From: Hemiscyllium ocellatum | Taxonomy: Eukaryota | Length of the DNA: 64,000 nucleotides | Assembly (NCBI RefSeq): GCF_020745735.1 | Contig: NC_083417.1 | Location: 75,702,001-75,766,000, forward strand | Reading direction: 5' to 3' | Shown: piece by piece, positions 3,886 through 64,000 of the stretch | How positions within the stretch are numbered: the first letter of the stretch is position 1 | Layout of the letters: the number at the start of each line of letters is the position of its first letter | Notes under the pieces: generated by a model | Databases searched by the model: none | What the model saw: only the letters and a program-made list of their open reading frames with translations | Told to the model about the DNA's origin: nothing | Program-made: the position numbers and the translations under genes

Positions 3886-4724
3886 AAGGTACTTCGTTAT
3901 CTGACTCTGACACATTCTCAAACCGAAATGCCTCACCATCAGAACCTCACCTGCCATCTCAAATATCTCAATCTAGGAACAATTAATTTGATCACAATCT
4001 ACTTATCATCCATTGGCCTCTGGGAGGTGTCCACTACCTTAGCAAAATGCTGGTTTAATTTATAGGCAGAGCTTTTAAATTTCAAACCTTCCTCTCCGTG
4101 AAAGGCATTTCGGTTCATTTTCAACAAGGAACCTTGTCTGAATAATTTAATCTTGCCAATCTCAGGTCTTAAATCTTCGTCAAATTACACAAGTGATTTG
4201 TTTTATTTTACCGAGTACCTGAAATATGTTTCTCTTGACTGAATCAATTTCTCCCCGTCTCTCCCTAGGTGCCCAGTGCCTAGTTTCACGTATTCTGGAA
4301 GCAAACTAGGGGGGCCCTGTCCATTTCAAGATTAAACATTTTTATTTTTTTCTACCTTTCGCTGTCAAATTCCTTTCCGACATTACCACACCCACACTAA
4401 CAAGATCATTATCCACAACATTCAGTTTGAAAACTAACAGCAATCTTGCACAGTGATCAAGTCAAGATTCTAGGTTTTAATTTATAGAGAACAGGTTCTT
4501 ACCTCCCCTGAAAACGGCCTTCAATCTATTTTGTTCCATCAAATTATCTGAAGGACAAATTGAATCATCAGTCATGATCAATAACTAATATTTGTCAATT
4601 CATATTGTGTAGAAAATTTGAGCAAAAAAAATTCCGTTGGGAACAAAGTCGCCAGTAATCAATCTAACTTGATAATACCTCAAATGATGTACATCACTCT
4701 TGGAGGTTATAATCCACCATCACC

Positions 4725-5345
4725 ACTATCACAATCACCAATGCTTGCCTTCATTCGATGGGGTATTGAATATAACAGCTGACAGGTGATGTTAAAATTG
4801 TACAAGACTTTGGTTTAGTCGCATTTAGAATGCTGTGTACAGTTCAGGTCGCCACGTTACCAAAAGGATGTTGACGCTTTGGAGAAGGTGCAGAAAAAGG
4901 TTTACAAGGATGCTGCCTGGTATGCAAGGTGCTACCTATGATGACAGGTTGTGTAGGTTAGGATTGTTTTCATTAGAGAAACGGAGATTCAGAAGGGATC
5001 TGATTGAGGTCTACAAAATCACGAAGGGTATACACAATAGATCGTGACAAGCTTTTAACCAAGGCAAGGGATTCAATAACAAGAGGTCACACGTTCATGG
5101 CGAGAGGTGAAAATCTTAAGGGGGCTTCAACCGCAAAGTACTCTACACAGAGGATGTTGCGTGCCTGGAACGCATTGCCAGCAGAGGTAGTAGAGACAGA
5201 CACGGTAGATTCATTTAAGGTTCGGCTGGACAGATACATGAGTAGGCGGGAGCAGAGGGATGCTTAGTAATTGGGCGATACGTTTAGACAGTAGATTTTT
5301 ATTGGCTAAGGCATGGTCGGCCGAAGAGCCTTTTCCTGGGCTGTA
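4725..5345 (+). mobile_element. CR1 LINE 3' fragment
   Basis: Frameshifted RFTRMLPG and LFSLEKRR..DLIEVYKI motifs, followed by the 3' hairpin ggccgaagagcc. Confidence 0.9.
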
Positions 5346-6009
5346 AATGTCCTTTTTTTTTGGTCTTTACTGATAATGCCCTTTCTGAATTCTCTCTCCA
5401 ACTCGGGGTTGACGTTGTTACTTGATTTTTGTTATTCCTAAGTTACATGCACCGGCTTACAGTCCTTCAGTTATTCCAGGTTTTTTTTTAAAAAACTATT
5501 TGATAGTTTTTATTGAGCAGAAACCTGCGCAGTTCCCGAAAACTGGGGTCATTTCAAACTGCAAAATTTCGAGTGCTGCATTTTCAACGTGGGTTCGCAT
5601 ATCGTGATTTCCATTACGCAAGTTGCTTGTTAGATGTCATAACCATCTGCGAGGTCCACCACATGTATTATATCCAAATTAAGCACATGAAGCTAATGTG
5701 TTGCCTAAACACCTCAGTTCACCATGCCTCAATACTTCCAGTAAAATACCATCTTTTGCTAGGTACAGGCATATATATGATTTTGTATCCTTTGAGTTTT
5801 TCACATGGATCAATCTCAATCTCATACAGACTACGAAACTGTGGAATTTATTCAGTCTGTTGTAACGCTTTGGATGTCTTTGATTTGGCATATTCTTAAG
5901 AAAATGTCGCACCCAATTATTAGGATCTGATTCCCACCTTGTATGCAGCTCCGTTCCAGATAGTTTATGTAGCCAGCCTCTGCTATTAGCTCAATAATGC
6001 ATTTGAGAC

Positions 6010-6320
6010 CAGCACTGTGACTCCATGATTAACACTGCTGCCTCACAGTGCTGGGGACCTGCGTTAGATTCCAACCTCGGGCAACTGTCTGTGTGGATTT
6101 TGCACATCCTCTCCGTGTCTGGATGGGTTTCCTTCCACAGAATTGGCCATGCTAAAATTGCCCAAAGTGTTCAGGGATGTGTAGGTTAGGTGCATTAGTG
6201 AAGGGAAATGTAGAAAAACAGGGCAGGGAAATGGGTATGGGTGGGTTACTCTTCAGTGGATCAATGTGGATTGTTAGGCCGAATAACCTGTTTCTGGAAT
6301 ATCAGGATTCTATGAGCTTC
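6010..6320 (+). mobile_element. tRNA-derived HE1-type V-SINE (older copy)
   Basis: Head ...cactgctgcctcacagtgctggggacc..., core ctgtctgtgtggattttgcacatcctctccgtgtct, and a CR1-like tail ending gattctatga. Confidence 0.8.
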
Positions 6321-6469
6321 TATTTCAGGCGCCAGATGCCTTCTGGTCAAGTTGATAGAAAACCTGCTGTATCTCCAAAGCGTATTGCCTCATCATTCAT
6401 TATTCATTCCATTTAGATGATAGAGAATACTCTTTATGCCGGATGTACTCTGGGCTTTCTGAAAGGTAA

Positions 6470-6590
6470 GAGACAGTCAGGTCTGCAGATGCTGAAGATC
6501 AGTGTTGAGATTGTGTTGTTGGAAAAACGCAGCAGGTCAGTCAGCATCCGAGGGGCTGGAAACCTTCATCGGGAATGAGGGCTCTTTCCT
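6470..6590 (-). mobile_element. PLE pseudo-LTR fragment
   Basis: ctgcagatgctgaagatcag...ggaaaaacgcagcaggtcag is the reverse complement of the terminus of the 29-32.5 kb PLE. Confidence 0.7.
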
Positions 6591-6749
6591 GAATGGTACC
6601 TTACTTATTACTTTGTCCCAATAAGGTAGACAGAGCATCATACTAAAATTCTTATGCTTGTTGATGGTTATTCATGTCAAATCCATTTTTGTGTTTCTTT
6701 CACAGAAATCCAAGGCACCCAGATACCTGATGTACATGGCATTTCAAGA

Positions 6750-7150
6750 CTTGAATAGGTATGATAATTTTTCACCATCCTAGCAAGTTCTAGGATTTTC
6801 TATTTTTCTCCCTTTTCTGCCAGTTCCAGTCTCATAAAGACTTGCTTGTAAATTTTCCATGATGTCTTGACACAATGATGCAGTTTTCCAACTGTTATTT
6901 TCAAGGACATTGTCCAATTGCCAAATTAATTGTGTGGCCAGCATTTATCATCTTTGAAGCACCAGATACATTGCAAGCCCTGAGTCTTTTCTGTTGAAAA
7001 CTAATGTGGACAAACCTGTGTCAATGTTTGAGTTTGTCAGTGCTCATGCTTCAAAATCTTCAGCTTCTTGGATGACTGTGTTTGTGAATGTAAGACAAGC
7101 TCATTTTGTTTGAACAGTGAGCTAAGGTCTTCCCTCCATGAATTGCAGTC
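6750..7150 (-). mobile_element. Possible ancient hAT (Ac-like) transposase relic
   Basis: Stop-riddled frame contains ASKMINAGHTINLAI, which resembles the hAT AHTLNL motif. The evidence is weak. Confidence 0.2.
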
Positions 7151-7242
7151 TTTACGAAGATGAGATCAGAGTAATGCAGAATGATTGTTCTTTCCGAGCA
7201 TGATCATGCTGAGATCATCAGTGAAATATTTCTGAATTGAAT

Positions 7243-7244
<2 letters not shown>

Positions 7245-7287
<43 letters not shown>

Positions 7288-7300
7288 TGTGTATGTGTGT
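7245..7300. repeat. (GT)n microsatellite
   Basis: Pure GT run at 7245-7286 with an imperfect extension. Confidence 0.98.
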
Positions 7301-8635
7301 CATATTTTCGAATAAGACAATTGTTCTTAACACATGGAAGTGAATCAAAATGCCTTGCCAAATAAAGTCAAATAATAAAGCCTCAACTGATTGATTAGGC
7401 TGTGGTGGGAGTTTTAATCAAGAAGAAGGTTATGCTTTTGAATATTTCGTCGAGATGTGATTCGTGTATTACTGTATCACGTCCAGTCGCTATGTCTGTA
7501 TTGTATACTCTGATTTCGACCTAACATTATCCCATGCTCTCGTATTGTATCTAGTGTGTTGTAGCATTCCCTGAATTGAATGCTAATGGCAAAGTGCTTC
7601 GCTATATCAGTGAAACCTGAAAATTTTAAACGTGTATCACTGTTCCTCTCCACACTTTATGGAGGAGCATTCAGACTTCAAACCTGTAGGTTAGTCAAAA
7701 AGTCAACTTAACAGAAACTTTCTGGGCGTAGCAATTAATGAAAACTCGAGGGAAAGGGCTTGCCTGAATACATGCTCTTTGCTGTTGCTGAAGGCTGACA
7801 AAGCAGTTGCGACTTGGATGCTTGCGGCCATCCTTCTTTACAAGATTTTGCCGTGACTGAGAGTTTAGGACCAGGGGATAATCTCGGGATGGAGTGCTTC
7901 CAGGTGTGGTGCGAATTTAGGAATTAAAGCAGGTTGGAACACACTTGTCAGCTTTTGCCGAACAATAATTTTGAGTAAAAATCACATTTTGATTTTGAAT
8001 ATACCTGTACAAAAAGTGATAGAAGTCTTGTTTCTTTTATGTTTGTCCAGTCTCCTTGTAGGTCTTGATTGACAAAACCATTCATTTCATGAGCTTTAGA
8101 GTAATTAGTTGCTGAGTTTTAATTGCATCACTCTAGATCGGAGCAATACTTTGAACAATGACTGTAGAGAATACATACTGATTATATTTTTAAATAAATG
8201 CGTTAAGCTGCACAATTTACTCGTTAAAAATAAAAACAAAAAGTGCTGGAGAGACTGAATTGCTCTGGCAATCTGTGGAGACAGAAACGGAGTTCACATT
8301 TCGTGCCTGGAATGGCTCTTTTCCAGAAACTGCAGTAATTTGTTCCTACAGCAATGTGGTGGACTGTCCACTGCCCCCACCTCCCCCAACCCCCCCACCC
8401 CGGGAAAGTTGGGATTGACAATGAACTCTGGACTCATCAGTGAAACGCACATCCTCTGAATGCGGAAAAAGGAAACATCGAAACCTCTGCACTGCCTGTT
8501 GGAATGACACCACCCTAACTTGGCATTTCAATGACCCACCTTGTTCCCAGGCTAATATTTCTCTTTGGCTTGCTCCAGTATTGCAATGAAGCTTAACACA
8601 AGCTGGAGGAACAATTCATTTTCTGCTAAGTTAAC

Positions 8636-9320
8636 AATCACACAATACCAGGTTTTAGTCCAACAGGTATATTTAGAAGCACTAGCTTTCGAAGCGCTGT
8701 TCCTTCATCTGTTGGTTTGTGGAGAATAAGATTGTAAGACACTGAATTTATAGTAAAAGTTTCCAGTGATGTAATTGAAACTATATATTGAAAAAGATCT
8801 GGATTGTTTGTTAAGTCTCACATCTTTTACATACTTGAAGAATTACATTTTAATCTCTTCAAGAACTGAATGAATCCATGTAAGCTTCTCTAACGCCGTT
8901 TTTAAGACTAGAATCAGTCAGACCATTGCGGCACAGACAGCCTGACAGGGGTAACTCACACCTTCCATGCATTATCTGGGCCAACATGACACCGATTGTT
9001 AAAGTTGACTTGAGAATGCAACTTTCAAAAATAGTTTTGCATTTTACATATGAAAGAACTGAAACCAACTTGGTCATTCTAAAAGAGGAAAGACTTAACA
9101 AACAATCCAGGTCTTTTTCAATATATAATTTCAGTTATACAACACTGAAAACTTTTATTATAATTTCTTTGTCTTACAATCTTATTCTCCACAACCACCT
9201 GATAAAGGAATAACGCTCTGAAAGCTAATGTTTCCAAATAAACATGATTTACTATAACCTGGTGTTTTGTGATTTTTAATTTTGTACACCTCAGTCCAAC
9301 ACTGGTGTCTCGAAATCATT
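8636..9320. mobile_element. Foldback PLE-derived element with about 230-bp inverted arms, each carrying a degenerate hammerhead (AGCU stem-III family)
   Basis: Left arm caccaggttttagtccaacagg...ctagctttcgaagcgctgttccttcatctg is the reverse complement of right arm cctgataaaggaataacgctctgaaagcta...ataacctggtg. It is nested in older PLE GIY-YIG relics (about 8.2-9.7 kb). Confidence 0.7.
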
Positions 9321-12199
9321 TTCTGCTCCGGACTTTACAGCCTTTAGGAGTCAGTGCTGAGCTGCACCACTTTAGACTACGGTCTTCAGACTCTATTTTA
9401 ATTGCTTCATCCACCAACAATGGCCTTGTCAGGTCTTGCTGGCTTTATTCTCAGTAAGGCAGAACCATTATTTCCACACAGTGAACACATACCATGCACA
9501 GCTCCATCACCCAACCATCACTGCTGGTACTTAATATGTCTTTTTTTTTCTGAGAACTCTCACAATCAGTTTCCCTTGCTCCTCCTCCCCCTCTGTCAGA
9601 CCATAATAAACACCACTTTAAGGCTCCATTCATACTGAACAAAAAGTAATTCGTTTCCCCCTCCACAGATATTCGAGTTTCAACTTTCAACTTCCAGGCA
9701 TTTTGACTTTCTACAGCATTTTTGCTTTGAGTTCATATTTCTACCACAGACCGAATTTTACTTTTACATCAAATTACAAAGAACATCGCAGTATATAACA
9801 TCACAGTTGGTTACAAGTTATTGAGTCTGTGATTTGTTTTCCCACTGATTGAACTGTCTCTCTAACCTTGAAGCTTCCTTGAAATGTTGTGACCCAGAAA
9901 TCAGTGAGCCTGCAGAATTCACTCATTCAGCAGGTTGTTGAGGGCAAACCATTGTGTTTTCAAGAAGGAGGTGGATGTAGCTCAAAGGACGTAGAGGAAG
10001 GTAGGATTAGAGTATTTAGGTCAATGATCAGCCATCATTTTATTGGATGGTGGAGCATGTTTAAGGAATAGAATGGCAGATTCCTGCTCCTATCCTCTAT
10101 GCGTCCTCCTCAGAACTCAGAACCAACACCGAGTTTGTGTGTGTCAAGCAAATTTCAATCAATGACAATATAATACACTATATCCTACGCACTTCAGCTT
10201 AATTTATTCACATCCTCTTACAAGTAAACTTACCAAACGCCTTGTGAAAATCCAGCTACACCCCCATCGAACGATTCTCCCTCATCTATTATAGTAGCGA
10301 AGCTTTAAAAAGCTCCAGTGGATTTGTTGAGAATGATTTGCATTTCATAAACATCTGCCACCTTTGCCTAATCCTGTCAATCCTTTTCAAATATTTCGAG
10401 ATAATTTCTTTTATAATTTATAAAACAATATGTGGCAGAAATTAATTTTTGCACCAAATACCGTGCACATTCATGTGAAGAATTATTTTACCATTAGCCC
10501 TCCTCCTATTTATAGTTGTTATCTATTTTCCCCTGCAGTTCTCTCTTTAGATATTGTTATGTAATGCCTCCATATCTTCCGACTATGGTAAGTATACATT
10601 TACCCTCATCCAAATCCTCCTCGAGCTCTCATCCTCCAGATCCACCCACCCCATGCGCATGCGCACGCACCCACACACAAATGAACACACACATGAATTA
10701 GATTAACACATTATCCAACAGCTTCAGTTATTCAAATCCCCTACAGACAACACCCAGTGCCATTCAAACGAAATCTGTCCCACTGGATCATCTCTCTACT
10801 GTCCAGTTCTGATACCGTTGCTCCCACAACCTGAAACCAATTCGCAACATGTAATGAACCATGTATTTTTCCCATTGACTTATTTTTCATAGATCAGTTT
10901 GCGTTTTGGTCAGGTCCTAATCCCAAGAATATTTCTTTGCAGGTTGTACTTTTCTAATTTAGTTTGCAACTCTTCAAAATTTTCAGCACAATCACCAGTA
11001 CAGTCCTATCAATGTCATTCTTCCCAACGTGGGTGAAGACATCTGGATTCCTCTCATCCATCTTCAAGTTCCTGTCTAACCCGAGCAGATATCCTTGAAC
11101 TTGACACTGGACAGAAAATGCAGTCTTTGGACCACTCGTTCACTGATGTACAGAACAATATACATTCCGCTAATTGTATTAAAATACAGATGAAATAACT
11201 GCAGATGCTATATATTTGATTTTTTAAAAAGTGATATTTCTGGGAGAAACTCAACAAATCTGGTAGCATATGTGGAGAGAAAACAAAACCCAGTTAACCT
11301 TTTTAGTCCAGTGAGCCTTTGACAGAGCCATAATTGAAATGTTCACTACCACAACTTCATTTCTATTTTGTCTCCCAACTCGAATGCCCTGTGTTTGCAG
11401 GTACTGTGGTCAGTTTCATAATCCTCCTGTTTCTACCACCTTGTTCTTTTTTATTCCCTCACAGCTTTCAAGCTGTATGTATAACTGTTTCTCTGGCTGA
11501 GGGTCCTTCACTGAAAAATCTGTGTTCCTCTTAAGTACCTCACCTGAAGTCGCACACTCCTGTCGCTGCTAACACATCAACTTTGAATGAGCTGTTCTGA
11601 GTAGTTTGACAACCCAATGGAACAAAGTGTTAACTGAACTTTCCCCTTCCCTGGTGTAATGCAATGACTTTAACTCAGAATCTAGATCAAATGCAAAGGT
11701 CTTTGAGTTGGAAGCGCTCCTACAGTTATGTTTGCAATAGACTACATTGGTGCTCACCAGCTTCAACATTTTGCAGTCGCAATACATCATCCATCCTGGC
11801 ATCACTGTTTTATTTGATTTAATTTATACATTACTTCACTTAGATTGCTGACTTACAAGAGATAACACAAAGTGTCACTACTGGAAGATTAGAGATAATA
11901 ACATCAAATTCTTACAGGCACAGATCAGCGTCTAAACAGCGTGGCTATTGTCGTGAATATTCTCCTAAAATCCATTCTAACTAATCAGTGTATTGCTGTA
12001 CAATAATGACTACTCATCCTTCTATGCCATTGAATTTAATCCGACTATCAATTGTAGGACATTGTATTGTACTTAGTATCTTCGAAACTTAATCAGATTA
12101 GTACTGAGTCTAATTTGCTATTGATAATTGCCTATCTTGATAACATTGATTTCATTTGTATGTAGTGACCTCAGCTGTATGCATACCGAAGCCTTAACA

Positions 12200-15100: not shown

Positions 15101-15725
15101 GGCATACAGTGCTTTAACTTTTATTAACAGAGGGATCGAGTTCCGACCCATGAGCTTATGCTACAGCTGTACAAAACTCTGGTGCGGCCGCACTTGGAGT
15201 ATTGTGTACAGTTATGGTCACCGCATTATAAGAAGGATGTGGAAGCTTTGAAAAGGGTGCAGAGGAGATTTATTAGGATGTTGCCTGGTATGGAGGGAAG
15301 GTCTTATAAAGAAAGGCTGAGGGACTTGAGACTGTTTTCGTTGGAGAGAAGAAGGTTGCGAGGTGACTTAATAGAGACAGATAAGATAATCAGAGGGTTA
15401 AATAGGGTGGACAGGGAGAGCTTTTTTCCAAGTGTGGTTAAGGTTAGCACGAGGGTGAATAGCTTTAAATTGAGGGATGATAGATATAGGACAGATGTCA
15501 GAGATTGTTTCTTTACTCAAAGAGTAATAAGGGTTCGGAATGCTTTGCCTGAAACGGTAGTAGATTAGCCAACTTTCATAACATTTAAGTCGTCATTAGA
15601 CAAGCAAATGGGCGTACATGGAATAGTGTAGGTTAGATGGGCTTCAGATGGTATGACAGATCAGCGCAACATCGAGGGCCGAAGAGCCTGTACTGCGCTG
15701 TAATGTTCTATCTTCTATGTTCTCT
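12200..15725 (+). mobile_element. Near full-length decayed CR1 LINE: esterase-type ORF1, APE endonuclease, RT, tail
   Basis: VHIGTND (SGNH esterase block) at about 12.58 kb, GDFN and TLDLVL...SDHN endonuclease motifs at 13.4-13.62 kb, RT motifs at 14.4-15.3 kb, and a ttctatcttctatg tail. Many stops and frameshifts, plus an internal deletion near 14.1 kb. Confidence 0.93.
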
Positions 15726-17329: not shown

Positions 17330-17536
17330 GTGTGAAGTGTGGAGGAGACAGCATTTGTGCAATATTGAGGGGAGTGAGGATGGAGTTCTGGGCAGAAAGA
17401 ATGTTGATAGTGCAGGTTAAGTGTTAGGAATATCAGAACAATGGTGTATCTAACTTCCAAAGTGGATAGAACAGACAATCTCTTTGTAGTGGGGGGAGTG
17501 AAGAGAGGCAATGACAACTGAGAATGCAGCAAGAAA

Positions 17537-17875
17537 AGAATCATACAATCCCTACAGTATGGACACAGCCAATTTGGCCCAGCAAGCCCCCAAAGAGTAA
17601 CCCACACAGACCCATTTCCTTCCCCTATTATTCTGCATTTATCTCTGAATAATGCACCACACCTACGTATCCCTGAACACTATGGGCAATTTAGCACAGC
17701 CAATTCAGCTAACCTGCTCATCTTTGGGTTTTAGGAGGAAAAGGAAGCTCCCAGAGGAAACACACACAAATATGGGGAGAATGTGCAAACTCCATACAGT
17801 CACCCGAAGCTGGAATCGAACTTGGGACCCTGGTGCTATGAGGCAGCAGTGCTAAATACTGGGCAACAGTACCAC
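17537..17875 (-). mobile_element. HE1-type V-SINE
   Basis: tRNA-like head with B-box-like GGTTCGATTCC (gggtcccaagttcgattcc), conserved core and CR1-derived tail. Confidence 0.85.
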
Positions 17876-25752: not shown

Positions 25753-26638
25753 AAACTAATCTACCAAACGTCAAGATGCATATTCAGCTGTCTCTGCATT
25801 GTATAGTCTATCATCCGTTGTCTGAATAACTGTTTAGCTCTGGTGTAGTTTTTCTGCTTTCTTTGTACCAAGTCAAAATGATTTTCCTCGGCTAAAAAGG
25901 AGATGCCGAGTATTAAAAGACAGAGATGATAGGTTGCTGTTGTAATGTGTATTGCTGGTTAAAGGGCAGCAGGTCAGGCATCATCCAAGGAACAGGAAAT
26001 TCATCAGGATTTAGGGAGATTGCAGAAGTTCGGGTTTTGATATGTTAGGGAAGGGGGGTTAGTGTACGTGAAAATGAAACTGGAACTGCTTCGTCTAAAG
26101 ACCGTATATGTCATCTAAAAGTGTATGTTTACAATATTCTCAGGGCAAAAAGGAGAGAAAACCCATAAAACTCTAAACACATTTTGTAGAAAAAACGAAT
26201 AATTTGCATAGAAAATGTGGACAGCAGACATTGAATGTTTTCTTGAATTGTAATCATGTATAATGATAAATAAAAACTGCGGTAAGGGTGTAAACCACCC
26301 AGCTCCAGCAACGAAACTGTTCTTGGATCCTGAACTCAGTGCACATTATTAATGACATGGTTCCAGTAGGATTCTAAAATAGAAAATGTTGGGACTTCTT
26401 TCCCTGGTTATGAAGAGGTCGAGAGGTTACCTGTTAAAAGCTTCTAAAATAATGAGGGGTACACATACGGTGAAGCGTCGTTGTATTTTCTCTAGAATGT
26501 GCGATTTCAAAACTAAGGGTGCACATTTTTAAGGTGAGAGGAAGAGAGATTTTAAAAAGGAATGAGGGGCAATGTTTTTACAACGAAATTGCTTTGCATG
26601 TGGAATGAACTTCCTGAGGAAGTGATGGATGTAACAAG

Positions 26639-43301: not shown

Positions 43302-43448
43302 TTATCGCAAAGCTGGCCTTTGTTTTTCCAAGTGAACCTGAGCATACTCTATGTCCTTTTCCCTATAATTTGTTCTCCCTGTTTTCCTGGGGGCTGACAA
43401 GTCTAAAGCCGCATAGGTCATTTTGTGATCCTGAGGTCCTTTCCTGGT
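43302..43448 (-). CDS. Terminal cytoplasmic exon with two tyrosine motifs: [48 protein letters not shown]
   Basis: Acceptor ttgttttcacag|ACC. In phase 0 it gives MTYAAL (ITIM-like) and IEYAQV (canonical I-x-Y-x-x-V ITIM). Confidence 0.82.
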   Translation of the reverse strand, partial: TRKGPQDHKMTYAALDLSAPRKTGRTNYREKDIEYAQVHLEKQRPALR

Positions 43449-46400: not shown

Positions 46401-49400
46401 GCTTTCACAGCCATAAAACTGAACTTCCCCTTTGCCCCAGTTTAAATCTCATGCATTCCTGTTCCCAAAGCTAGATTCATCACCCATTTTTCCCTACTGC
46501 AGACACAGCTCCACTTCTCCCTCTCTGGACAGAGTCATTGAGTCACATAACATGGAAACGGACCCTTCAGCCCCACCAGTCCATGCGAAACAAGTTTCCC
46601 AAACTGAACTAATCCTACAGCCTGCATTTGGCCCAAATCTCTCTAAACCTTTCCTGTCTATTTGTCTATCCAAATATCTTTTAAATGATATAACTGTACT
46701 TGCATTGATCAATTCCTCCAGCAGATCATTCCACACGCAAACCCTCTGTGTGAAAAAGATGTACCTCAGGTCCCTGTTAAATCTTTCTCCTCTCATCTTG
46801 AGCTTCCCCACCTCAGGGAAAGGACTTTTGCTGTTCACCTTAGCTGCACCTCTCATGATTTTCTAAACGTTGATAAGGTCACTCCTCAACTTTGTAAGCT
46901 ACATAAATAAAATCTGTCTGTGACCCCTTTGGTTCAGGATCATCTTCCCCAGCACAAGAAACAACAGTCTAATTTCCTCACTTCAGACTTGGCGGCAACA
47001 CCATAACCTGTCCTGAAGAAGCTCTTTCCTTCCCTCACTTCAAACCCAATCTGACTGCTCCTTCCTGGGACATGTTGCCCCCTTCCTTGCTTGGGACATG
47101 ATATCCCTCTCGCCGAATTTCCAGTATGGTCTGTCTTTGCCCTTCCTAGAACCAATCCATGCTCTTCCCACGGGGAGACCTGATTCCCTTAGGACAAGAT
47201 AATCACTCCCTATTGCGGTCTGCCGGACCAAAGGTTTCAACTATCCTGATGCACCTAATGCACTGTATTACTTCACTGGCTGACTAGCGACTTCTCATAT
47301 TGCAGTTATCCATGTGCCATCCCACTATCCTATTCACCTGGCACACGACATCCTGTCAACGTATTCCCTCTCCATTTGGCATTCTGCCCACCTGGCACCC
47401 TACACCATAGCAGAATATCCGCCACCCAATTGGCATCCTGAACATTTGGCATAATTACCACCTGCCACCCTAATTCATATTAGCTTGCCACGTCATCTCA
47501 CTTGGCATCCTATTTATCTGAACTTCATCCAGATAGCTGCATCCCCTTGCAGCACCCTCACGTCATACTTACATTTGGTACCGACCACTTGATAGCTGGT
47601 GTGAAAGTGGCTGTCTGTGTGGACAGCTAAACTTCATAAAGGGGCAAGTGACGGCCGTGAAAAGGGGACTTAGTTTGCTTTTCCCTGACCACTCTGTGTT
47701 ACAAGAGAACTATTAAAATGGAAGCAGATCTTTGTGTTTCGGATGGATGCTTGATCAGAAACTACTTTCAGAAATATGGAGCTCTTCATCGCTGACATTG
47801 AAGGGTCTGGATGCCAATTTGTGTGAGATTGGCATTCCTCAGAAATATGCGCCCCTATATTTGTTTATGGTACATATTTTGATGTTCAAAAATGGATTAT
47901 TCATCAATGAATGCATGCTGGGAAACCTGCAGAGTTATTCTCCAAAAGCAATGATCCCAGACAATGAAATGATCTTCCTTTTGCAGTAAAGCACACTTGG
48001 CATGCTCATATCTCTGGGAGGTTGGATAAAATTTGAATATTGTACCTCATTGACCTTATATTGCCCTGGCCATGTCAGATAAGCTAAGTATTGTTTAACC
48101 TACTGAGTTGCACAGAGAAAATCTTGAGATATGGTGCAAAGTTAAAATTGACATTCCATTTGGACATGGTGCATTTCAAAAGATTAAATAAGTTCCTACC
48201 CATGTTTTTCTTTGCTGCGTATCGCTTCACCATGATGAGGCTGAGCACCAATAATATCAATCCACCTGATACAGTTGCAGAAATCATCAAATACTTTGTG
48301 AACACACAATCTAAAACAACCAAATCACAAACATCAATTAACATTGTTTACTGTTCATATCAGTTAACACGAGAGTGCAAAGTTAGGGTACACTAAATAG
48401 TTTTAGTCATGTCTTAATGGAATACATAGTCAACTACAGAACTGAACTTAAGTTTTCCACTTCTCTTTGGATTTTCAGACTGAGGTAACAATCTTTACAT
48501 TATTTGTCTGAAACCTGCAGAGGATATAAATCATGGTGAGTGTTTTCTCAGTCTCCTGGAGCTCATTAGACTGGAGTGGCACATAAAACGTCCATAATTT
48601 TACTGTAGAAAGGCTACTGAACTGTGTTGAGGAACCCAATGCCAGAGAAATGCCTGTGAGAACTATCTGTTAGTGAAATATTCCCTGCCAAACACCAGAG
48701 TTAAGACCAAACCTCTATAGTATCTCATTCAGATCGTGATGGGTGTACACTTGGATAGCTAACTCAAAACCCCCTCCAATAATTCACCGGCCTTTGCTTG
48801 CCCACTAGTGGTGCACTGTCACTCAAGGTAGTACATAATTTCTCTTTATGTGATGGACATGTTGCACTCAAAAGTCAAGACTACTATTTGTGGTACATTG
48901 TGACCAGAACAACTATAATGTATTGATGTGAGAAAAAGCATTGGGCATCCTGTCGGTGAAATTTCTTCCTCCTCAACAAAATTCAATGGTTAATTCTCGC
49001 AAATATCAACCATTCAAAAAATGACATTTCTGAAATCCTGTATACTCCCCATATTAACACTAGCCACAAGGAAGAATGAGGAAGAATGGACCTAGTTCTG
49101 AGAGGCACATCTCCGGCTTCATTATAAACATCAACAGTAATATGCTATTCGATCCTTTTGATGTTACAACATTTTTCAATGATTCACATAAAATCTTTTG
49201 GCTCCGTAGCATATGAAATGGTTATTAGAGTTGTGGTCATGAGACCATGAAGTAGAAAATGATGATTAACTTAGTTTATGTTTGACAGAAAGGAAAATGA
49301 AACAACAAATGAAGATTAAAGAGGAAAAAAAGGCAACCAAACGTGATGAGTGAAACTTGCATCATTTTCGCCTATGGAATTCATTTAAAGCAGAGACCTC

Positions 49401-55400: not shown

Positions 55401-58400
55401 TCGGTTGTGTTGTACATAGTGTTGAGGGCTTTTGCAGGCGACAACAAGACATTGACAGGATGCAAACCTGGGCCGAGAAGTAGCAGATGTGTTTCAACCT
55501 GGATAAATGTGAAGTGATTCATTTTGGAAGGTCGAATTTGAATGCTGAATATAGGGTTAAAGACAGGATAGTTGGCAGAGTGGAGGAAATACATGGTTCT
55601 AGCAAGAAAAACGTACAACTTTGGGACTTGCTTCCCTGGAGATTAGGAGGTTGAGAGGTAACTCGATAGAAGTTTATAAAATAATGAGGGGTACAGATAC
55701 AGTGAAGGGTCGTTGCCTTTTCCCTAGGATGGGTGATTGCAAGACTATGGGCACATATTTAAGGTGAGAGGAGAGACATTTTAAAAAGGCATGAGGGGCA
55801 ATGTTTTTACACAGAAGTTGGTTCGCATGTTGAATGAACTTCCTGAAGAAGTGATGGATATGGGGACAATTACATTGTTGAAAACACATTTGGGTAAGTA
55901 TATAAATGGGAAAAGTTTGTCGGGATTACAGAGCAGGAGCAGGCGGGTGGAACTAGTTTCGTTTGGGATGAGGTTTGTCATGGACTTGTTTAACATAAGG
56001 GTCTGTTTCCGCGTGGTATGATTCTAAGTATCACAGATTTGATGTGATTTATTAATAATATGGTTCCAGTAGAAGTCTTACCCGTGTTGCCATTCATTAC
56101 GATGTGACTGACCGTGGCTGAAATTTGGAGGGTGCTGTGGGATACCATGCAAGTATAAACAGTTCCGGCTCGGATTGCCTGTGTTTCTTCCAACCAGCTC
56201 GATGCTTCGTATCGACTGTCGTCTGTTGCTTGAATGACTGTACTGATTCTTGTTGTAGTTTTATTGCCATCTTTGTACCAACTAAAACTGATATCCCTCG
56301 GGTAAAAGGGAGATGTGGAGCATAAAACAGCAAGAGTCACGGATGGATCTTTTTCAGGCTGCTGTGAGAGAATATTCAGTGGAGTCGGTGGAACTAGGGA
56401 AGTGAAAAGGAAGATAAAATAAAGTTATCTTGAGGTCAGAAGAGGATTACAGCCCAATCTTTTGTTTTGGTCCACTGCTGGACAGTTACTGTCCAGTTGT
56501 CGGGAGATGTGCTCATGGTGGTGAGGGTTGGACAATTCTCGCTGTTGGTGCCGAGATGCGAACATCGTACAGTATCAGAGGGAATATTAACTCATCCCCG
56601 GACAAAGTGCGGGCAAGAAAATGTGGACCGATGTTGTTACAGATCTCAGTTTTTCTGTTGGAAATAACTGTTGATAAGCTCCGGAATTGGATCCATGATT
56701 TGCTATTGCCGGTGGTGCAATAAGACAGCGGTGGAAATGACATAATAACAGATGGAAAAAAATAACTGATCCAAAACTGACACAGAAGTCAACGTAGTCA
56801 CTTACTTATTGCAAAGCAAAAACATGTGGAGTGTCCCGGACGGTGGCTTCAGCAGTTTTTAGATTTTAGCAATATCTGCTGTCTAAATTTTAATATTTAC
56901 CTATTAAAATCACACCAGCAAAAAATGAACCCGGTGCTAGAAAAGCAGAGCAAGTCAGGCAATATCCGAGGAGCACGAAAATCGACGTTTCTGGCAAAAG
57001 CCCTTCATCATGAATGCTGCCTGAGCTGCTGTGCTTTTCCAGTCTCCTGTCCCTCGGATGCTTCCTGACCTGCTGTTCTTGTCCAGCCTCCTGCTCCTCG
57101 CATACTGTCTGAGCTGCTGTGCTTTTCCAGTCTCCTGCCTTTCGGATACTGTCTGACCTGCTGTGCTTTTCCAATCTCCTGCTCCTCGGATAATGCCTGA
57201 CCTGCTGTGCTTTTCCAGTCTCCTGCCCTTCGGATACTGTCTGACCTGCTGTGCTTTTCCAGTCTCCTGCTCCTGGGATAATGCATGACCCGCCGTGCTT
57301 TTCCAGTCTCCTGCCCTTCGGATACTGTCTGACCTGCTGTGCTTTTCCAATCTCCTGCTCCTCGGATGTTGCCTGATCTGCTGTGTTCTTCCAGTTTCCT
57401 GCCCCTCGGATGCTGCCTGACCTGTTGTGCTTTTCCAGTCTCCTGCCCCTCGGATTCTGCCTGACCTGCTTTGCTTTTCCAGCAACACACTCTGGGTTCC
57501 AGCCTCCAGCATCTCCAATCCTCACTTTCGTTTAAAAATAAGCCCGTCAAGAAAAGCCATCAATGAAAATAAACAAAAATTGCTGGAGAAACTCAATAGG
57601 TCTGGGAGCATCTGTGAAAAAGCCGGGGTTAAATTTTGGGCACCAGGTAACCTTTTTCGCAACTGTCAATTTTGAGTGAAGAAGATGTTAAAAATAAATA
57701 ATCAAATATGAACAAATCTGTGTCGCTCACGACAGTCTATTGCCCTTAACCAATATCGTGGAAACGTAGGAGAAAATTACTTCAGATATTGGAATCTGTC
57801 TTGAGAGCAACAAATACTGGCGATCACAGCCAGTTAGGCAGCATCCATGGAGAGAGAGCACGTTAACGTTTGGATGACCTTTGATCAGGGCATGTATCTT
57901 TTCATCATATTGCAATAGTACTTGAGATTCCTGTCTATGGCCCACGGCTGTATAATTCAGGTGCAACTGCTAATACATTATTCTAAACTATTGAAATATT
58001 GAACATGAATTACAGCAGTCAGCGATGCAACTTAAATGTGGGCATGTATCACAAACTGCGGAGATGTTTCCAAGGAGCGCACACACACCGCCTGCCATTT
58101 GGGCCTGCTTGGACACTATGTCACTCAAAACATACAGCAACGTTGCTGACTCTCAACAACTCTCCTTATTGACCAAGGATTTACTCAGTTCAAGGATAAT
58201 TTGGGTTGGACAAAAATGTTAACTGGCCATTGAAGACATAAAACATCAAATACATTTTTAATAAATCCTGTAATGTGAACTTTCCCAAGCCAACCCGAGA
58301 ATTACTTCAAATATGTAATATTACTTGTCTATATCGCTTACATCTTGCTTTCATACATACCCCACACAGTTAAATTGGACCCTGTTCCGTTTCCAATCAA

Positions 58401-58902
58401 TTTGCCTTGATGGACGATTGTGCAATTGTACATTCCTCTGTCCTGTACATTGACATTGATTATCTGAAGGAAGCCACCGAATTTAGTCTGGAGGCCAATT
58501 ATTTTTCGGTCATCTTGTTCCGCGTTGAGATAATGAGGATCACCTTGCTTCCACCAGGTTACCTTGACAGCTTGGCCATCTTGAAATAAAGGAATTGAGC
58601 AATAGAAGCTCACATTTGCACCCACTGTTCCAGTCACGTTCGCTGGTAACTGGTTCACTGTAACCGAGATTACCCCAGAACCTACAGAAAAAGACATTAA
58701 CAAACAAACTATAGCAAGATTAAATAAAGAGTGGTATTCAGTAATTGACTTAACCTGTCCAAACGAAAATTGTACACGGTATATGAAATAAAATTAAATA
58801 ACAGGTCGACTTTACGGAAAGGCAATGCACCTTAGAAAGAGAAAGAATACCTGGGAAAATTGCTGTCTGAATAAAACAGAAAAGTGCAATACTCAGGAAC
58901 AT
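43302..58902 (-). CDS. Non-rearranging VJ-C1 Ig-superfamily type-I membrane receptor with dual-ITIM tail (SIRP/NKp30-like architecture), about 326 aa, spliced model
   Basis: Exons 58902-58851 (leader), 58681-58361 (V), 56393-56082 (C1), 48310-48200 (TM), candidate 47610/47614-47573, and 43448-43302 (ITIMs). All boundaries are canonical GT-AG, L/V/C1/TM are phase-1 compatible, and no exon has an internal stop. Confidence 0.85.
44340..44646 (-). mobile_element. Young full-length HE1-type V-SINE in the last intron
   Basis: A-box TGGCACAGTGG, B-box GGTTCAATTCC, V-SINE core and CR1-like tail gggccgaagggcctgtttccacactgtaggg. Confidence 0.93.
46500..46900 (-). mobile_element. CR1 3' fragment
   Basis: [23 protein letters not shown] motif plus tail. 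Confidence 0.88.
47573..47614 (-). CDS. Candidate first cytoplasmic exon with tandem acceptors 4 nt apart
   Basis: Strong donor AAAT|gtaagt. Acceptors ccacacag|ACAG|CCAC give a 42-nt exon (phase 1 to 1, [14 protein letters not shown]) or a 38-nt exon (phase 1 to 0, [13 protein letters not shown]). Confidence 0.45.
48200..48310 (-). CDS. Stalk/transmembrane exon: (D)[36 protein letters not shown]
   Basis: Acceptor ggttgttttag|AT and donor ATGG|gtagga, 111 nt, phase 1-1. An uncharged 22-aa hydrophobic stretch is followed by a KR stop-transfer signal. Confidence 0.85.
50905..51350 (+). mobile_element. Intronic CR1 3' fragment
   Basis: [16 protein letters not shown] motif. Confidence 0.88.
52300..52985 (+). 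mobile_element. Intronic CR1 3' fragment
   Basis: [20 protein letters not shown] motif plus tail. Confidence 0.9.
53380..56025 (+). mobile_element. Intronic CR1 patchwork (endonuclease, RT, 3' end) with an inserted SINE head (about 53640-53750) and a PLE mini-element
   Basis: GFLTQY...[11 protein letters not shown] endonuclease motifs, RT remnants, and the [16 protein letters not shown] 3' motif. Confidence 0.8.
54251..54436. mobile_element. Foldback PLE mini-element with both hammerhead cores deleted, inside a CR1
   Basis: TSD actcaatac (54242-50) / actcgatac (54437-45) interrupts the CR1 GFLTQY|VDRPT sequence. Confidence 0.75.
56082..56393 (-). CDS. C1-set Ig domain exon
   Basis: Acceptor cttttcacttccctag|TT and donor ACGG|gtaaga, 312 nt. 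Reads PPTPLNIL...[23 protein letters not shown]...[10 protein letters not shown], with the C1 hallmarks FYP, W and YxCxVxH. Confidence 0.93.
56925..57530. repeat. PLE mini-element whose right arm expanded into a 44-bp minisatellite (about 10.5 units, about 57010-57482)
   Basis: Unit tctcctgctcctcggatgctgcctgacctgctgtgcttttccag, with gcttttcc at 57121, 57165 and 57209. Flanked by a normal left arm and the normal pseudo-LTR end. Confidence 0.9.
58361..58681 (-). CDS. Germline-joined VJ-type (V-set) Ig domain exon
   Basis: Acceptor tctttttctgtag|GT and donor TGGG|gtatgt, 321 nt. Contains B-strand Cys (FYC), C-strand WW, DRGMYNC, and a J-like GTGSNLTV in the same exon. Confidence 0.93.
58851..58902 (-). 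CDS. Signal-peptide exon [17 protein letters not shown](G)
   Basis: ATG at 58902, hydrophobic core, phase-1 donor CCAG|gtattc, and a 169-bp intron to the V exon, as typical for Ig-type leaders. Confidence 0.85.
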
Positions 58903-59724
58903 GTTGATCTATTTGCTGGAGAGACAGAGCGTGAACTGGCTGATAGTTTGCAAGAACGTGAAAGTACCGTTCGATAGACAGTGTCATAGTGCAGCGTAAC
59001 ATCCGGTTCATTGATCAGGAACGGGACTCTTTCTTGTCCATTTTGCTAAAGTTCAGTGCAACAGTTGGCCATTCACCGTGTCTGGCTCGAGCTGATCATT
59101 CAAGCCAGTCTTTTCCTCGGTTGTGGATGTGTGGACTGTATGAGCAGAACAAACATCAGTGTGTTCTTTCAAATAATCACAGTTAATATTCCTAACTGAG
59201 CCAATCAACGATGGATTTTAAGACCGTAAGTAAAATTCCAACCGCCCCTCACCCCTACCCCATGATTAACAGACATCTATGTCGGTTGCATTTTTAAAAA
59301 GAACAAATATTCTGCTACCCCGCCTTTTGAGGACGTGTGATGTGATGAAATGATATTGATTTTTCTGTGTGAGAATAAGACGTTTTCCTCAACGATGTGT
59401 TACACTAAGGACTGTGCGCATTTATACCACTGCCATTAATTTTCTAACCACGCTTGGTTGTAAATATTCTGGTAACATGCACCTTGCCAAGACCCACATA
59501 GGATTCTACATGTTTCGGTCAATTTGACTTATCCTTCCGAAGCTTAACTTTATTGTCTCCAAACAATCCTTATAAATCAATGTGTCTCTTCGAAATATTA
59601 TTCTGGTAACCCATTTTGGCCTGCTCTCAAAGCCTTTACATTTTTCCTTAAATAACATGATGCCAGATATTACCTCATTAATATGATGTGTACTAAATAT
59701 AACTTTCTTACTTTTGTTTTTGTT

Positions 59725-59960
59725 TTTCATTACTGATCTGGAATATCTCCGATCCGGAAATCATTGATGAACTGGGAGATCCACTCCATACTGAAATCCA
59801 GGTCCGAGCCGTACAGATTGAGCAGCTAGGGTCTATCGGGAAAATCCAGCTAGGACCTTCAGAAGACCATCAGAGAAGTCAAGAGGCAATATAAAATAAG
59901 CCTGACACCCAGACCAACGACACGGACACCTACCATTTGTGGCAAGGTTTACACCAGCTT
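59725..59960 (+). mobile_element. Old non-LTR (Rex1/Babar-like) fragment
   Basis: Resembles the ...YDLRKAIREAKRQY...LWQGL segment of Rex1-type ORFs. Family assignment is from memory only. Confidence 0.4.
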
Positions 59961-61297
59961 ACAAAGGAAATTCAATACAGTTATTGAGAATTCAGCGCTC
60001 ATTAGCACCGCCCCATCAGATAACCTGTACCGAAATAAAGGAGGGAGTTAACTGGACAAAAAGAAATTAACATCAAAGTATATTTTGCTCCATCTATATT
60101 CTACTGGTTCAGTTGTTCTTCGTACAAACTCTTGCCTTCCTTGTGTTTGTGTCGAACTTGCAATGGCAAAAAATACTAGAATATACAGTTTTGATTTCAT
60201 GAATGATTATACATCTCTAAAATGAACAACTAAGATTTTATGACAGTAAGTACACAGCGATGTGTGGCACTCTCAATATGGCCGCCTGTACACCATCATT
60301 TCATGTAATAAAACAATTTCTATCCAAGAGGAACTCCAAGATGCTCTATCAAGGACAAATTTACAATATTAATTTTGAGTCAAACAGTGTGGCAGGGGCA
60401 TCAGGACGGGTTGTGCCTTATGCTTTTATGTTTGCACCTCATATCTGAACATGCATCTCGCAAGTGCCGTTACACTTAAATAAAAATAACTGCACAGGTT
60501 GTTCGCTGAATTCCTGCCGTGACATACTGGAGGTGCGAAGTCGAAATCGTTTTGATGTTACATTAGAAAAAGAAAATGGAACAACTCTGACTTGAATCGT
60601 AAACGAGCCATTATGTAATTAAGGCAATGATGCACTCAATGTTAAACCACAAAATGTTCCACCACTTTATCTCAGCTAGCCATCTTGAGTTATGTTAACA
60701 GCCAACCGCGCTGTTCAATCTCAAACGTTTGATCAATGGAATAGATTGATAGCATCTTAAAGTTTTTGTGCAAATTTTTAAATTGCTTCACCTAATATTG
60801 CCTTCGGAATGGCAAACAACAAAACCAAAGTAAGCTATTGGAATAACACTTAATTTAGAAAGAAAGATGTAAGAATATTTTAAGAGTGGCATGCATTTTC
60901 GAATTACGAAATGCTATTTATTTAAACTTCTTGCAATTAAATTTAACAAATGGATATCATCAGATGCAGTTTAATAACTGACGTTAATATATCCAAGACC
61001 TTGAAATTTAAAATAATCTTTATTTCCATTTGGGGATAACAAAGCAGAGCAAACAATGATTCATTTTATAAACCACAATCTATAGAAGTCTGGCTGAACT
61101 GTCTAAGCTTCTCTGAGGCAGGAATTTAGATCAGACATGTCCGTTACAGGCAAACTTTTGAAATTGCATGTTCTGTCACCCGAGAATTGACATTGACAAT
61201 CGAGACTTGTTGCATTTTTGCGGCCATCATTATCCATAAGAGATTAAGTATTCAAAGTTTGGGAACAGATTTGTAGCTCGTGTGCTCGTTGTTGTGG

Positions 61298-61521
61298 TTC
61301 TGTTTGCCGAGCTGGGAGTTTGTGCTGCAAACGTTTCGTCCCCTTTCTAGGTGACATTCTTAGTGCTTGAGAGCCGCCTGTGAAGCGCTTCTGTGATGTT
61401 TCCTCCGGCATTTATGGAAACATCACAGAAGCGTTTCACAGGAGGCTCCCAAGCACTGAGGATATCACCTAGAAAGGGGATGGAATGTTTCCAACACAAA
61501 ATCCCAGCTCGGCGAACAGAA
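61298..61521. repeat. Foldback element of another hammerhead-bearing PLE family: about 106-bp inverted arms around a 12-nt loop
   Basis: ...ctgtgatgtttcc|tccggcatttat|ggaaacatcacag.... The arms combine to give CUGAGGA-U-GUCACC(UAGAAA)GGGGAC-GAAAC-GUU. Confidence 0.75.
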
Positions 61522-62369
61522 TGGCATGTTTTCACACAGTAGGCACTCAGTCTTTAATTGGCACTACCGGATAATTTGCTGAAAATGACGCTTGTTTCCT
61601 CATGCCAGCACTACAGAGTTAATTAAAATGGTCACTTGTATTTGCCAGGGCCTAATCTGACCAGGCGTGCTTCCTCACTCAATACCTGTGTGGGTACTCC
61701 CTACGTTAAAAATGCAACAGTTCCCATGTCATCAACAACTAAATGCGATTAATAAAAACAGGAAAATCAGTAAATAACATTTCGAACACTGATTTTCGGA
61801 ATATACTGAAGTCCATACATTTCAAGGCCTGAACAAGGAATTCCACAGAGAGGGAATAACATTTTCGCAGACAGTTCTCAAACCTAGTAGACTTTATTGT
61901 AAGTTATTTTATATTTTGTTATGTACACCATCGAGTTTTTGTTTTAAAATGAATATCCCCCAAAAACAGATCTTGACGGGAAGGCGGACTGATATTAGTC
62001 GACTTCTGCCTCGCGCTAATGGTTATACTGAACTAGTTTAGCTCAGAACAAAGTGAATTACTCCCGTGCATTGCTACAGTGAAATAATGCAGGATATGAA
62101 GATCGATGAACACACATGCAGGACGACTGGCATTTTTTCTAATGAATTATGCGACCGCTAACAATTTTCCCACAACTATTCCTCAAAAGGGGGTTGTTCA
62201 ATTTACAAAATGCAATGTAATTCTTTGCAAGAGATGATTTTTAAAAAATCACTAGCTCCAGAATGTTGGCACATCATCATGACTTCATAACCATTAGCAG
62301 TTCATTAAGAAAAACGTGTTCACATTAGAGATAAGTCGATTTGAAATTCGAGAAAAAAGGCGATATTGA

Positions 62370-63080
62370 CCCGTAGCTGAAAATATGTTGCTGGAAAAGC
62401 ACATCAGGTCAGGCAGCACCAAAGAAGCAGGAGGAATCCTGAAAAGGGGCTCATGCCCGAAACGTCGATTCTCCTGCACCTTGGATGCTTCCTGACCTGC
62501 TGCGCTTTTCTAGCAGCACATTTTCAGCTCTGATCTCCAGAATCTACAGTCCTCACTTTCTCCGCAAAGATTTTAACCTACTGCGAATCCTCTTGCAAGG
62601 ATGCCTTCCTTGAAGAAGCTCTCTTCCTCCCTCTACAAGGATTTCAGTGAGTCCCTCTCTCACTGCACACCCCAGGTCATCTCCTCTACTATTCCTGAAG
62701 AAGGGTTCATGCCCAAAACGTCGATTCTCTTGCTCCTTGGATGCTGCCTGAACTGCTGCGCTTTTCCACCATCACATTTTCAGCTCTGATCTCCAGCATC
62801 TGCAGTTCTCACTTTCTCCTCGAAGATTTTAAGCTACTGTGAACCCTCTTGCAAGGATGTCTTCCTTGAAGAAGCTCTCTTCCGCCCTCTACAAGGATTT
62901 CAGTGAGTCCCTCTCTCACTGCACACCCCAGGTCATCTCCTCGACCATTCCTGAAGAAAGGCTCAAGCCCGAAACATCGCTTCTCCTGATACTTGGATGT
63001 TGTCTGACATGCTGCGCTTTTGCAGCAACACATTTTCAGCTCTGATCTCCAGCATCTGCAGTCCTCACTTTATCCTCGAA
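62370..63080 (+). mobile_element. Tandem PLE pseudo-LTR array with three hammerhead motifs at an exact 256-nt period (retrozyme-like)
   Basis: C3 of CUGA at 62439, 62695 and 62951. Each unit is a pseudo-LTR plus the start of the PLE ORF (MPSLKKLSSSLYKDFSESLSHCTPQVISS). Confidence 0.85.
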
Positions 63081-63242
63081 TATATTGACACGTTATATTC
63101 AGAGACACTGGGACATCACTGAAGACGCAAGGTTCTTCAGACCTGGACGCATCACACTCAAGAAAGAAATTGTAATGGTTAAGAACAAAACTTTGATTAA
63201 TTTAGGTAAGGAAAAATGAACTAAAATGTAACTCTCCCATTA

Positions 63243-63577
63243 ATTCAGTGTTCATTATTATCGCCCTTAAACAGATACGCAGCGGAAATCAGCCTTAAAC
63301 AGAATTGAGCAAGAGCATTGTTTGTGAATTAATAAACGCTTCCAAAAAATGGCAGGCATCCTAATTTGCGATTGAATATGAACAATTGGTCAACAGTTCT
63401 TTGTGAAGTATTCAGTGTTCATTGTTATCGCCTTTAAACAGAAACACAGCGGAAATAAGCCTTAAACAGAATTGAGCAAGAGCATTGTTTGTGAATTAAT
63501 AAACACTTACAAAAAATGAGAGGCATCCTAACTCGCGATTGAATATGAACAATTGGTTAACAGTTGTTTGTGAATTA
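63243..63577. repeat. Tandem duplication, 2 x about 167 bp, in the probable 3' UTR of the upstream paralogue
   Basis: attcagtgttcatt...ttgtgaa starts at 63243 and again at 63410. Confidence 0.9.
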
Positions 63578-63665
63578 ACAGGAAAAGAACATCACTGAAG
63601 ACACACTCGAGAAAGAAATGAAATCAATGCACATCACTAACATACTGCCTGTAAGATTAGCAACA

Positions 63666-63839
63666 TTATGAGATGCTGGTTTCTCCGAAGACGGCCTCAG
63701 TTGCTCCGGTTGGTGCTGTTACTTTTAGCTCGGCAGAGTCTGGAATCTTGGCGTTTATGTTCAGTTTTCTGACTTTGCTGGTGCCGTTCAATTCGAGACT
63801 GGCGGACGTTAATTCATCGTCTGCGTCCGATTGTTCCAT
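63666..63839 (-). CDS. Terminal cytoplasmic exon of a probable upstream paralogous receptor, tyrosine-free
   Basis: Acceptor gaacttcatag|ATG in phase 0 gives MEQSDADDELTSASLELNGTSKVRKLNINAKIPDSAELKVTAPTGATEAVFGETSIS*, which is colinear with exon 43448-43302. Confidence 0.65.
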   Translation of the reverse strand: MEQSDADDELTSASLELNGTSKVRKLNINAKIPDSAELKVTAPTGATEAVFGETSIS

Positions 63840-64000
63840 CTATGAAGTTCAGGGACTATTTTTAAAAAGAAAAACATACCTAAATTAAAATGCCACTTAC
63901 GAGCACGGGGAACCAAGAACATTTGCCCCTCAAGCCTGTTCCACTATTGAATTAATGATTGGTGTGCGCTGTATCTGCCTGCGCTCTGCAGTGCCATATT

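Follow-up and report, generated by a model that had tools for sequence, protein, structure and literature searches.

The analysis covered one 64,000-nucleotide stretch of Hemiscyllium ocellatum DNA (NC_083417.1), hereafter the window. Two members of a receptor gene family were recognised on its minus strand: a predicted upstream paralogue, represented by a terminal coding exon near the end of the window, and a downstream neighbour, whose exons served as the reference. A decayed exon of the same family lies further downstream. The features are as follows.

63839..63669, stop codon TAA at 63668-63666, minus strand: terminal coding exon of the predicted upstream paralogue, 57 codons, without Tyr (hereafter the tail exon)
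63841-63840, minus strand: AG splice acceptor for the phase-0 reading of the tail exon, directly before the ATG at 63839
58851..58902, minus strand: leader exon of the downstream gene, with a phase-1 donor, conserved in Chiloscyllium punctatum (contig L001)
58361..58681, minus strand: V(J) exon of the downstream gene, Pfam V-set 1.1e-08
56082..56393, minus strand: C1-set exon of the downstream gene, Pfam C1-set 5.4e-13
48200..48310, minus strand: transmembrane (TM) exon of the downstream gene from a splice-site reading, the span followed by KRYAAKKNM
43448..43305, stop codon at 43304-43302, minus strand: last exon of the downstream gene, the reference tail for comparison
25789-25909, minus strand: decayed remnant of a C1-set exon belonging to this receptor family, now a pseudo-exon interrupted by a frameshift and in-frame stops, ..PRKIILTWYKESRKTT..

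Translated in phase 0 from the minus strand, the tail exon yields MEQSDADDELTSASLELNGTSKVRKLNINAKIPDSAELKVTAPTGATEAVFGETSIS. A first-pass annotation had described a 57-residue open frame with no tyrosine here, and this was confirmed at 63839..63669 on the minus strand: the Tyr count of the translation is zero, which is unremarkable by itself in 57 residues (with 3% Tyr, a probability of ~0.18 by our own estimate). Counted from the acceptor, residue 12 is Ser (TCC at 63806-63804, within LTSASLEL), residue 35 is again Ser (TCT at 63737-63735, within PDSAELKV) and residue 51 is Phe (TTC at 63689-63687). The triplet preceding the ATG in frame is TAG, so that the open frame begins right at the acceptor. 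Read in phases 1 and 2, the exon runs into a stop after 7 and 9 codons, respectively, and a junction in either of these phases would leave a tail of 7 or 9 residues as against 57 in phase 0. A second AG occurs 16 nt upstream of the acceptor, beside a pyrimidine tract; with splicing to this AG or a junction in phase 1 or 2, the predicted tail would be 7 to ~15 residues long. A GTAAGT at 63900-63895, 61 nt above the acceptor, was weighed as a possible micro-exon donor and set aside, the corresponding sequence in C. punctatum being ATGAGT. The remainder of the upstream gene is placed beyond base 64000 on the minus strand. Some 100 nt 3' of the stop codon of the tail exon there is a 167-nt tandem duplication (63243-63574, 2 copies, 92% matches), which falls in the would-be 3' UTR of the upstream gene.

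The downstream gene combines a V-set domain, a C1-set domain, a single transmembrane span with no charged residue and a tail with tyrosine motifs, a SIRP-like V-C1 organisation. The boundaries of its leader, V, C1 and TM exons were read as phase 1. Since the TM donor was read as phase 1 and the motif frame of the last exon as phase 0, either at least one small cytoplasmic exon lies unlocated between them or the TM exon ends 29 nt earlier, at a phase-0 donor ATG/GTGAAG. The last exon, counted from its acceptor, contains MTYAALDL (Tyr12), Tyr28 and IEYAQVHL (Tyr35). This xTYAxLxL and xEYAxV wording presumably resembles that of the SIRP-alpha tail. IEYAQV is a canonical ITIM by the consensus (S/I/V/L)xYxx(I/V/L) (PMC12151841). 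In comparisons with PDB, the C1 exon gave its best match with shark UrIg2 (9dmx_A, 1.6e-17), further matches being immunoglobulin heavy chains, SIRP-alpha (4.9e-12) and SIRP-gamma (2.8e-10).

Used as tblastn queries, the peptides of the V, C1, TM and tail exons matched no exon of this family in the window other than those listed above, the pseudo-exon at 25789-25909 included; this broken C1 copy shows that the receptor cluster includes dead members. Pfam returned no family for either of the two tails, and Rfam at gathering thresholds returned none for 59000-64000 of the window. Two tandem arrays were observed in the region, one of them between the tail exon and the downstream gene (62437-63080, a 256-nt repeat, 2.5 copies, 89% matches) and the other, a 44-nt satellite of 10.6 copies, further downstream at 57017-57482; both were linked by BLAST to a C. 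punctatum satellite (L001, ~15250-15550).

The first-pass annotation had set the serines at residues 12 and 35 of the tail exon opposite Tyr12 and Tyr35 of the neighbour. This correspondence was reproduced by counting from the first exon bases, 63839 and 43448, and, as it had pointed out, a single A>C change leads from TAC to TCC and from TAT to TCT. With BLAST, the tails gave no match to each other at E <= 10, and their homology was visible solely by an in-register test. Aligned from the acceptors without gaps, the upstream and downstream tails scored 34 with BLOSUM62 (10/48 residues identical); shuffled versions of the upstream tail had a mean score of -35 (sd 12) and none of 20000 reached 34, giving z = 5.5. 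When all six frames of the 64-kb window were scanned, the pattern xT[Y/S/F/C/H]AxLx[LIVM] was confined to these two tail exons. The second motif, x[D/E][Y/S]Axx, follows the first at an identical distance in both of them, and the pair is found nowhere else in the window. The in-register score and the shared motif spacing together argue that the likeness of the tails is not due to chance, and thereby support the earlier reading of the exon as a paralogous tail with two motifs in the SIRP-alpha style, its frame open and the tyrosine of each motif replaced by serine.

In its present form the tail exon does not encode an ITIM, as no (S/I/V/L)xYxx(I/V/L) occurs in its 57 residues. LTSASL agrees with the consensus apart from the Ser in the Tyr position, and PDSAEL departs from it both at the Tyr position and at the -2 residue. 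A third motif-like stretch with Phe, EAVFGET, had also been proposed. Phe51 is indeed present there, but the stretch has Thr at +3, which is off the ITIM consensus, lies beyond the aligned part of the tails and reads EAVCGET in C. punctatum, so that its interpretation as a third motif did not hold up.

A plus-strand ORF of 71 codons (63673-63888) lies opposite the tail exon and has a counterpart of 81 codons in C. punctatum; it probably owes its openness to the codon composition of the sense frame. That the coding strand is in fact the plus strand, an idea that could draw on this frame being open in both species, or that the tail frame is open by chance, we regard as extremely improbable: the in-register similarity to an ITIM tail, with identical motif spacing, is far beyond chance, and the plus-strand frame has no such relative.

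A phmmer search with the 57-residue tail against 1.84 billion cluster representatives retrieved one true relative, GCC37395.1 of C. punctatum, an ab initio model of 136 residues whose start coincides with the ATG of the tail exon. Other proteins retrieved (P0001, P0003 and others, 570-3945 residues) were rejected as compositional; their scores sum up to 13 matched stretches, and the three that were inspected were all repeat-rich. Neither the 1.84 billion representatives nor word-based searches with the tail and with residues 1-57 of GCC37395.1 contained a full-length protein carrying the tail. Word-based protein searches with the tail, the V exon and residues 1-57 of GCC37395.1 added nothing new within their length window of 0.55-1.75x the query, too narrow a range for a single exon to retrieve a full-length receptor. 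An exact search of JGI metagenome contigs with a 34-nt conserved piece of the exon gave no match.

The C. punctatum contig L001 is collinear with 55591-63970 of the window at 85-89% nucleotide identity and also contains the leader, V and C1 exons of the neighbour, which identifies it as the orthologous locus. Its tail exon (L001 10001-10171) is 88% identical in amino acid sequence to that of the window and has no indel; 13/174 bases differ. As in the window, residue 12 is Ser (TCC). Residue 35 is Tyr (TAT, in DPEYAEL) as against Ser (TCT) in the window, and residue 51 is Cys as against Phe. At the position of the TAA stop of the window C. punctatum has GAA, and the frame continues for 55 more codons; with two species, the paralogue is the sole guide to the polarity of this change. 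An insertion of ~50 nt lies just 5' of the last 15 intron bases in C. punctatum, those 15 bases themselves being conserved. At -2 of the second motif, both sharks have Pro and the downstream paralogue has Ile; with Pro in this position in both species, the second motif would be off the ITIM consensus even with its Tyr.

The stretch of L001 in which upstream Ig and TM exons would be expected is a 5.4-kb N gap (4177-9609), and the 4.2 kb above this gap contained no Ig exon. No poly(A) signal common to both sharks was found near the stop; an AATAAA occurs in C. punctatum 202 nt past the position of the stop of the window and is absent from the window copy. Elsewhere on L001, a partial second C1-like copy (17421-17551) is located ~1 kb further downstream than the orthologous C1 exon, with 76% nucleotide identity to it and 48% amino acid identity over 27 residues; it has no counterpart at the matching place in the window.

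Descent of the tail exon from an ITIM-bearing tail is thus indicated by the in-register score, by the equal motif spacing and by the Tyr35 retained in the C. punctatum orthologue, and these sequence comparisons identify 63666-63839 as a genuine tail exon of ITIM origin, belonging to a predicted SIRP-like paralogue. The two tyrosines had been thought to be lost in parallel. This is contradicted by the C. punctatum exon, in which Ser12 stands together with Tyr35 (TAT): since Ser12 is common to both sharks and residue 35 differs, the two were not lost together. On the aligned codons, Tyr12 appears to have given way to Ser before this lineage and that of the bamboo shark parted; the comparison suggests Ser35 to be the derived state, with polarity taken in these two species from the Tyr of the paralogue alone. 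The two substitutions accordingly have separate histories, and the stop, residue 51 and the intron end likewise differ between the sharks.

The single-base difference at codon 35 (TCT in the window, TAT in C. punctatum) could reflect an assembly error or a heterozygous variant, in which case TAT would be the common allele and the first Tyr alone would truly be lost. We consider this very unlikely. Seven other codons and the stop also differ between the two exons (13 bases), a rate that is below the local background, so that one more difference at codon 35 is to be expected and is not a sign of error, and the sequence itself shows no sign of low quality.

Substitutions in the tail exon between the window and C. 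punctatum comprised 4 synonymous and 8 non-synonymous differences, corresponding to an omega of 0.58 (p = 0.29 against neutrality). The exon has diverged by 7.5%, compared with 10.9% over the surrounding alignment of 5.2 kb (one-sided p = 0.084), and has no indels against 1.2 expected at the local rate (P = 0.31). Its omega is lower than those of the V exon (0.70, at 76% amino acid identity with the C. punctatum orthologue) and the C1 exon (0.98) of the neighbour, which is itself a fast-evolving gene. Taken together, the data lean slightly to constraint, and a live, fast-evolving tail and a young relic would be inseparable by them.

The comparison with the orthologous exon therefore went only part of the way with the first-pass annotation, Ser12 being shared, Ser35 being absent with Tyr in its place, and the omega of 0.58 being non-significant. 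Its view that the receptor had been deliberately silenced is not borne out by this omega or by the divergence test (p = 0.08), nor by a stop, a residue 51 and an intron end that differ between the species.

The exon may be a relic of a dead gene, either because the upstream paralogue is a pseudogene or because the tail exon is its sole survivor, the frame having so far escaped any stop or indel. We regard this as a possibility, held with some doubt. Constraint that is statistically indistinguishable from neutrality is what such a relic would show, and it would also explain a stop that is not conserved (TAA against GAA with its 55-codon read-on in C. punctatum), the 50 nt inserted immediately before the acceptor in that species, the lack of a poly(A) signal near the stop common to both sharks, the failure to find an annotated full-length protein with this tail and the decayed C1 exon that this family has left at 25789-25909. 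Set against these points are a tail frame that remains open, without indels, in both sharks, an exon that has diverged less than its flanks, and an omega that is below those of the intact-looking exons of the neighbour.

An intact paralogue kept by selection as a partner of the neighbouring receptor, the idea put forward in the first-pass annotation, was also considered, whether as a decoy, as an activating receptor signalling through a charged TM residue and an adaptor, or under regulation by Ser phosphorylation. Activating receptors of the SIRP-beta type have a short tail and a basic TM residue for pairing with an ITAM adaptor such as DAP12. In favour of a selected partner, Ser12 is common to two shark genera, in both of which the long frame is open, and the partner would lie in tandem with an ITIM-bearing neighbour, as in the SIRP-alpha/beta/gamma loci (PMC12975943). 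We nevertheless think such a partner unlikely, because the retention of Tyr35 in C. punctatum means that the Tyr-less state is not a conserved design, purifying selection is not significant and no kinase motif was identified around either Ser; in addition, the activating and silent SIRP paralogues have tails of 6 and 4 residues and not full-length, point-mutated ones (PMC12975943). The decoy or activating-partner reading is hence unsupported, and an intact, expressed partner of the ITIM neighbour with a full-length Tyr-less tail and with Ser12 maintained across hemiscylliids appears improbable. If there were such a partner, it would be a non-inhibitory or decoy receptor that arose by point substitution, as against tail truncation in SIRP-beta and SIRP-gamma, and its Ser12 might be a phospho-serine or adaptor site.

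The explanation that we consider best, and to which we would give about an even chance, is that the tail has been drifting under relaxed constraint in a birth-and-death receptor cluster. According to this explanation, 63666-63839 would be the 3'-terminal coding exon of a second gene, in tandem with the first, from a family of shark V(J)-C1-TM receptors that do not rearrange and have SIRP-alpha-like tails. Its ancestral tail would have carried two inhibitory motifs, xTYAxLxL ... xEYAxx[V/L], like that of the downstream neighbour, and the phosphorylatable tyrosines would have been lost in steps, Tyr12 first and the one at position 35 later in the lineage of the window. Relaxed constraint would then have led to a signalling-dead receptor or to a gene heading to decay. 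We saw no sign of a specially selected decoy. Counting against drift, the open frame in both sharks and the lower divergence of the exon than of its flanks would also fit a maintained function.

In ITIM signalling the phosphate of the phosphotyrosine docks on conserved SH2 arginines of SHP-2, a machinery that is conserved across jawed vertebrates, sharks included (PMC12151841, PMC12975943). As SHP-type SH2 domains need phosphotyrosine, a Tyr-less tail would be unable to recruit SHP phosphatases; the upstream gene, if intact, would thus encode a predicted receptor of this family that is unable to deliver an inhibitory signal.

The mammalian SIRP-alpha/beta/gamma genes are likewise tandem paralogues whose ectodomains combine V and C1-set domains, as does the downstream shark gene. 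In SIRP, one member has tyrosine motifs that recruit SHP-1/2 and others are without them, the SIRP-beta and SIRP-gamma tails being 6 and 4 residues long (PMC12975943). The predicted shark tail differs in being full-length, with 57 residues and Tyr replaced by Ser. The downstream shark gene has one C1 domain and SIRP has two; orthology to the SIRP locus is not implied. Shark UrIg and UrIg2 (Flajnik et al. 2025, PMC12227049) are also non-rearranging V(J)-C1 genes, and UrIg2 is the best PDB match of the C1 domain of the neighbour. Nurse-shark UrIg2 has nine C1-type domains, and the text of the paper makes no mention of ITIM, SIRP, tyrosine or cytoplasmic tail (PMC12227049). With one C1 domain and an ITIM-type tail as against nine C1 domains, the receptors described here belong to a different family. 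Our search of the literature for SIRP-like V-C1 receptors of elasmobranchs, of V(J)-C1-TM organisation with SIRP-alpha-like tails, found no paper.

Loss of ITIMs in duplicated immune receptors is a well-known theme, of which a full-length tail with substituted tyrosines is a variant. Vertebrate innate immunity has repeatedly arrived at pairs of inhibitory and non-inhibitory receptors, and sharks offer the oldest jawed-vertebrate view on the origin of such pairs. Known from a single exon, the locus is of modest value; as read here, it would show an ITIM tail partway through its loss, with one Tyr gone in two genera and the other in one genus, and would document a stepwise route from an inhibitory receptor to silence or decay.
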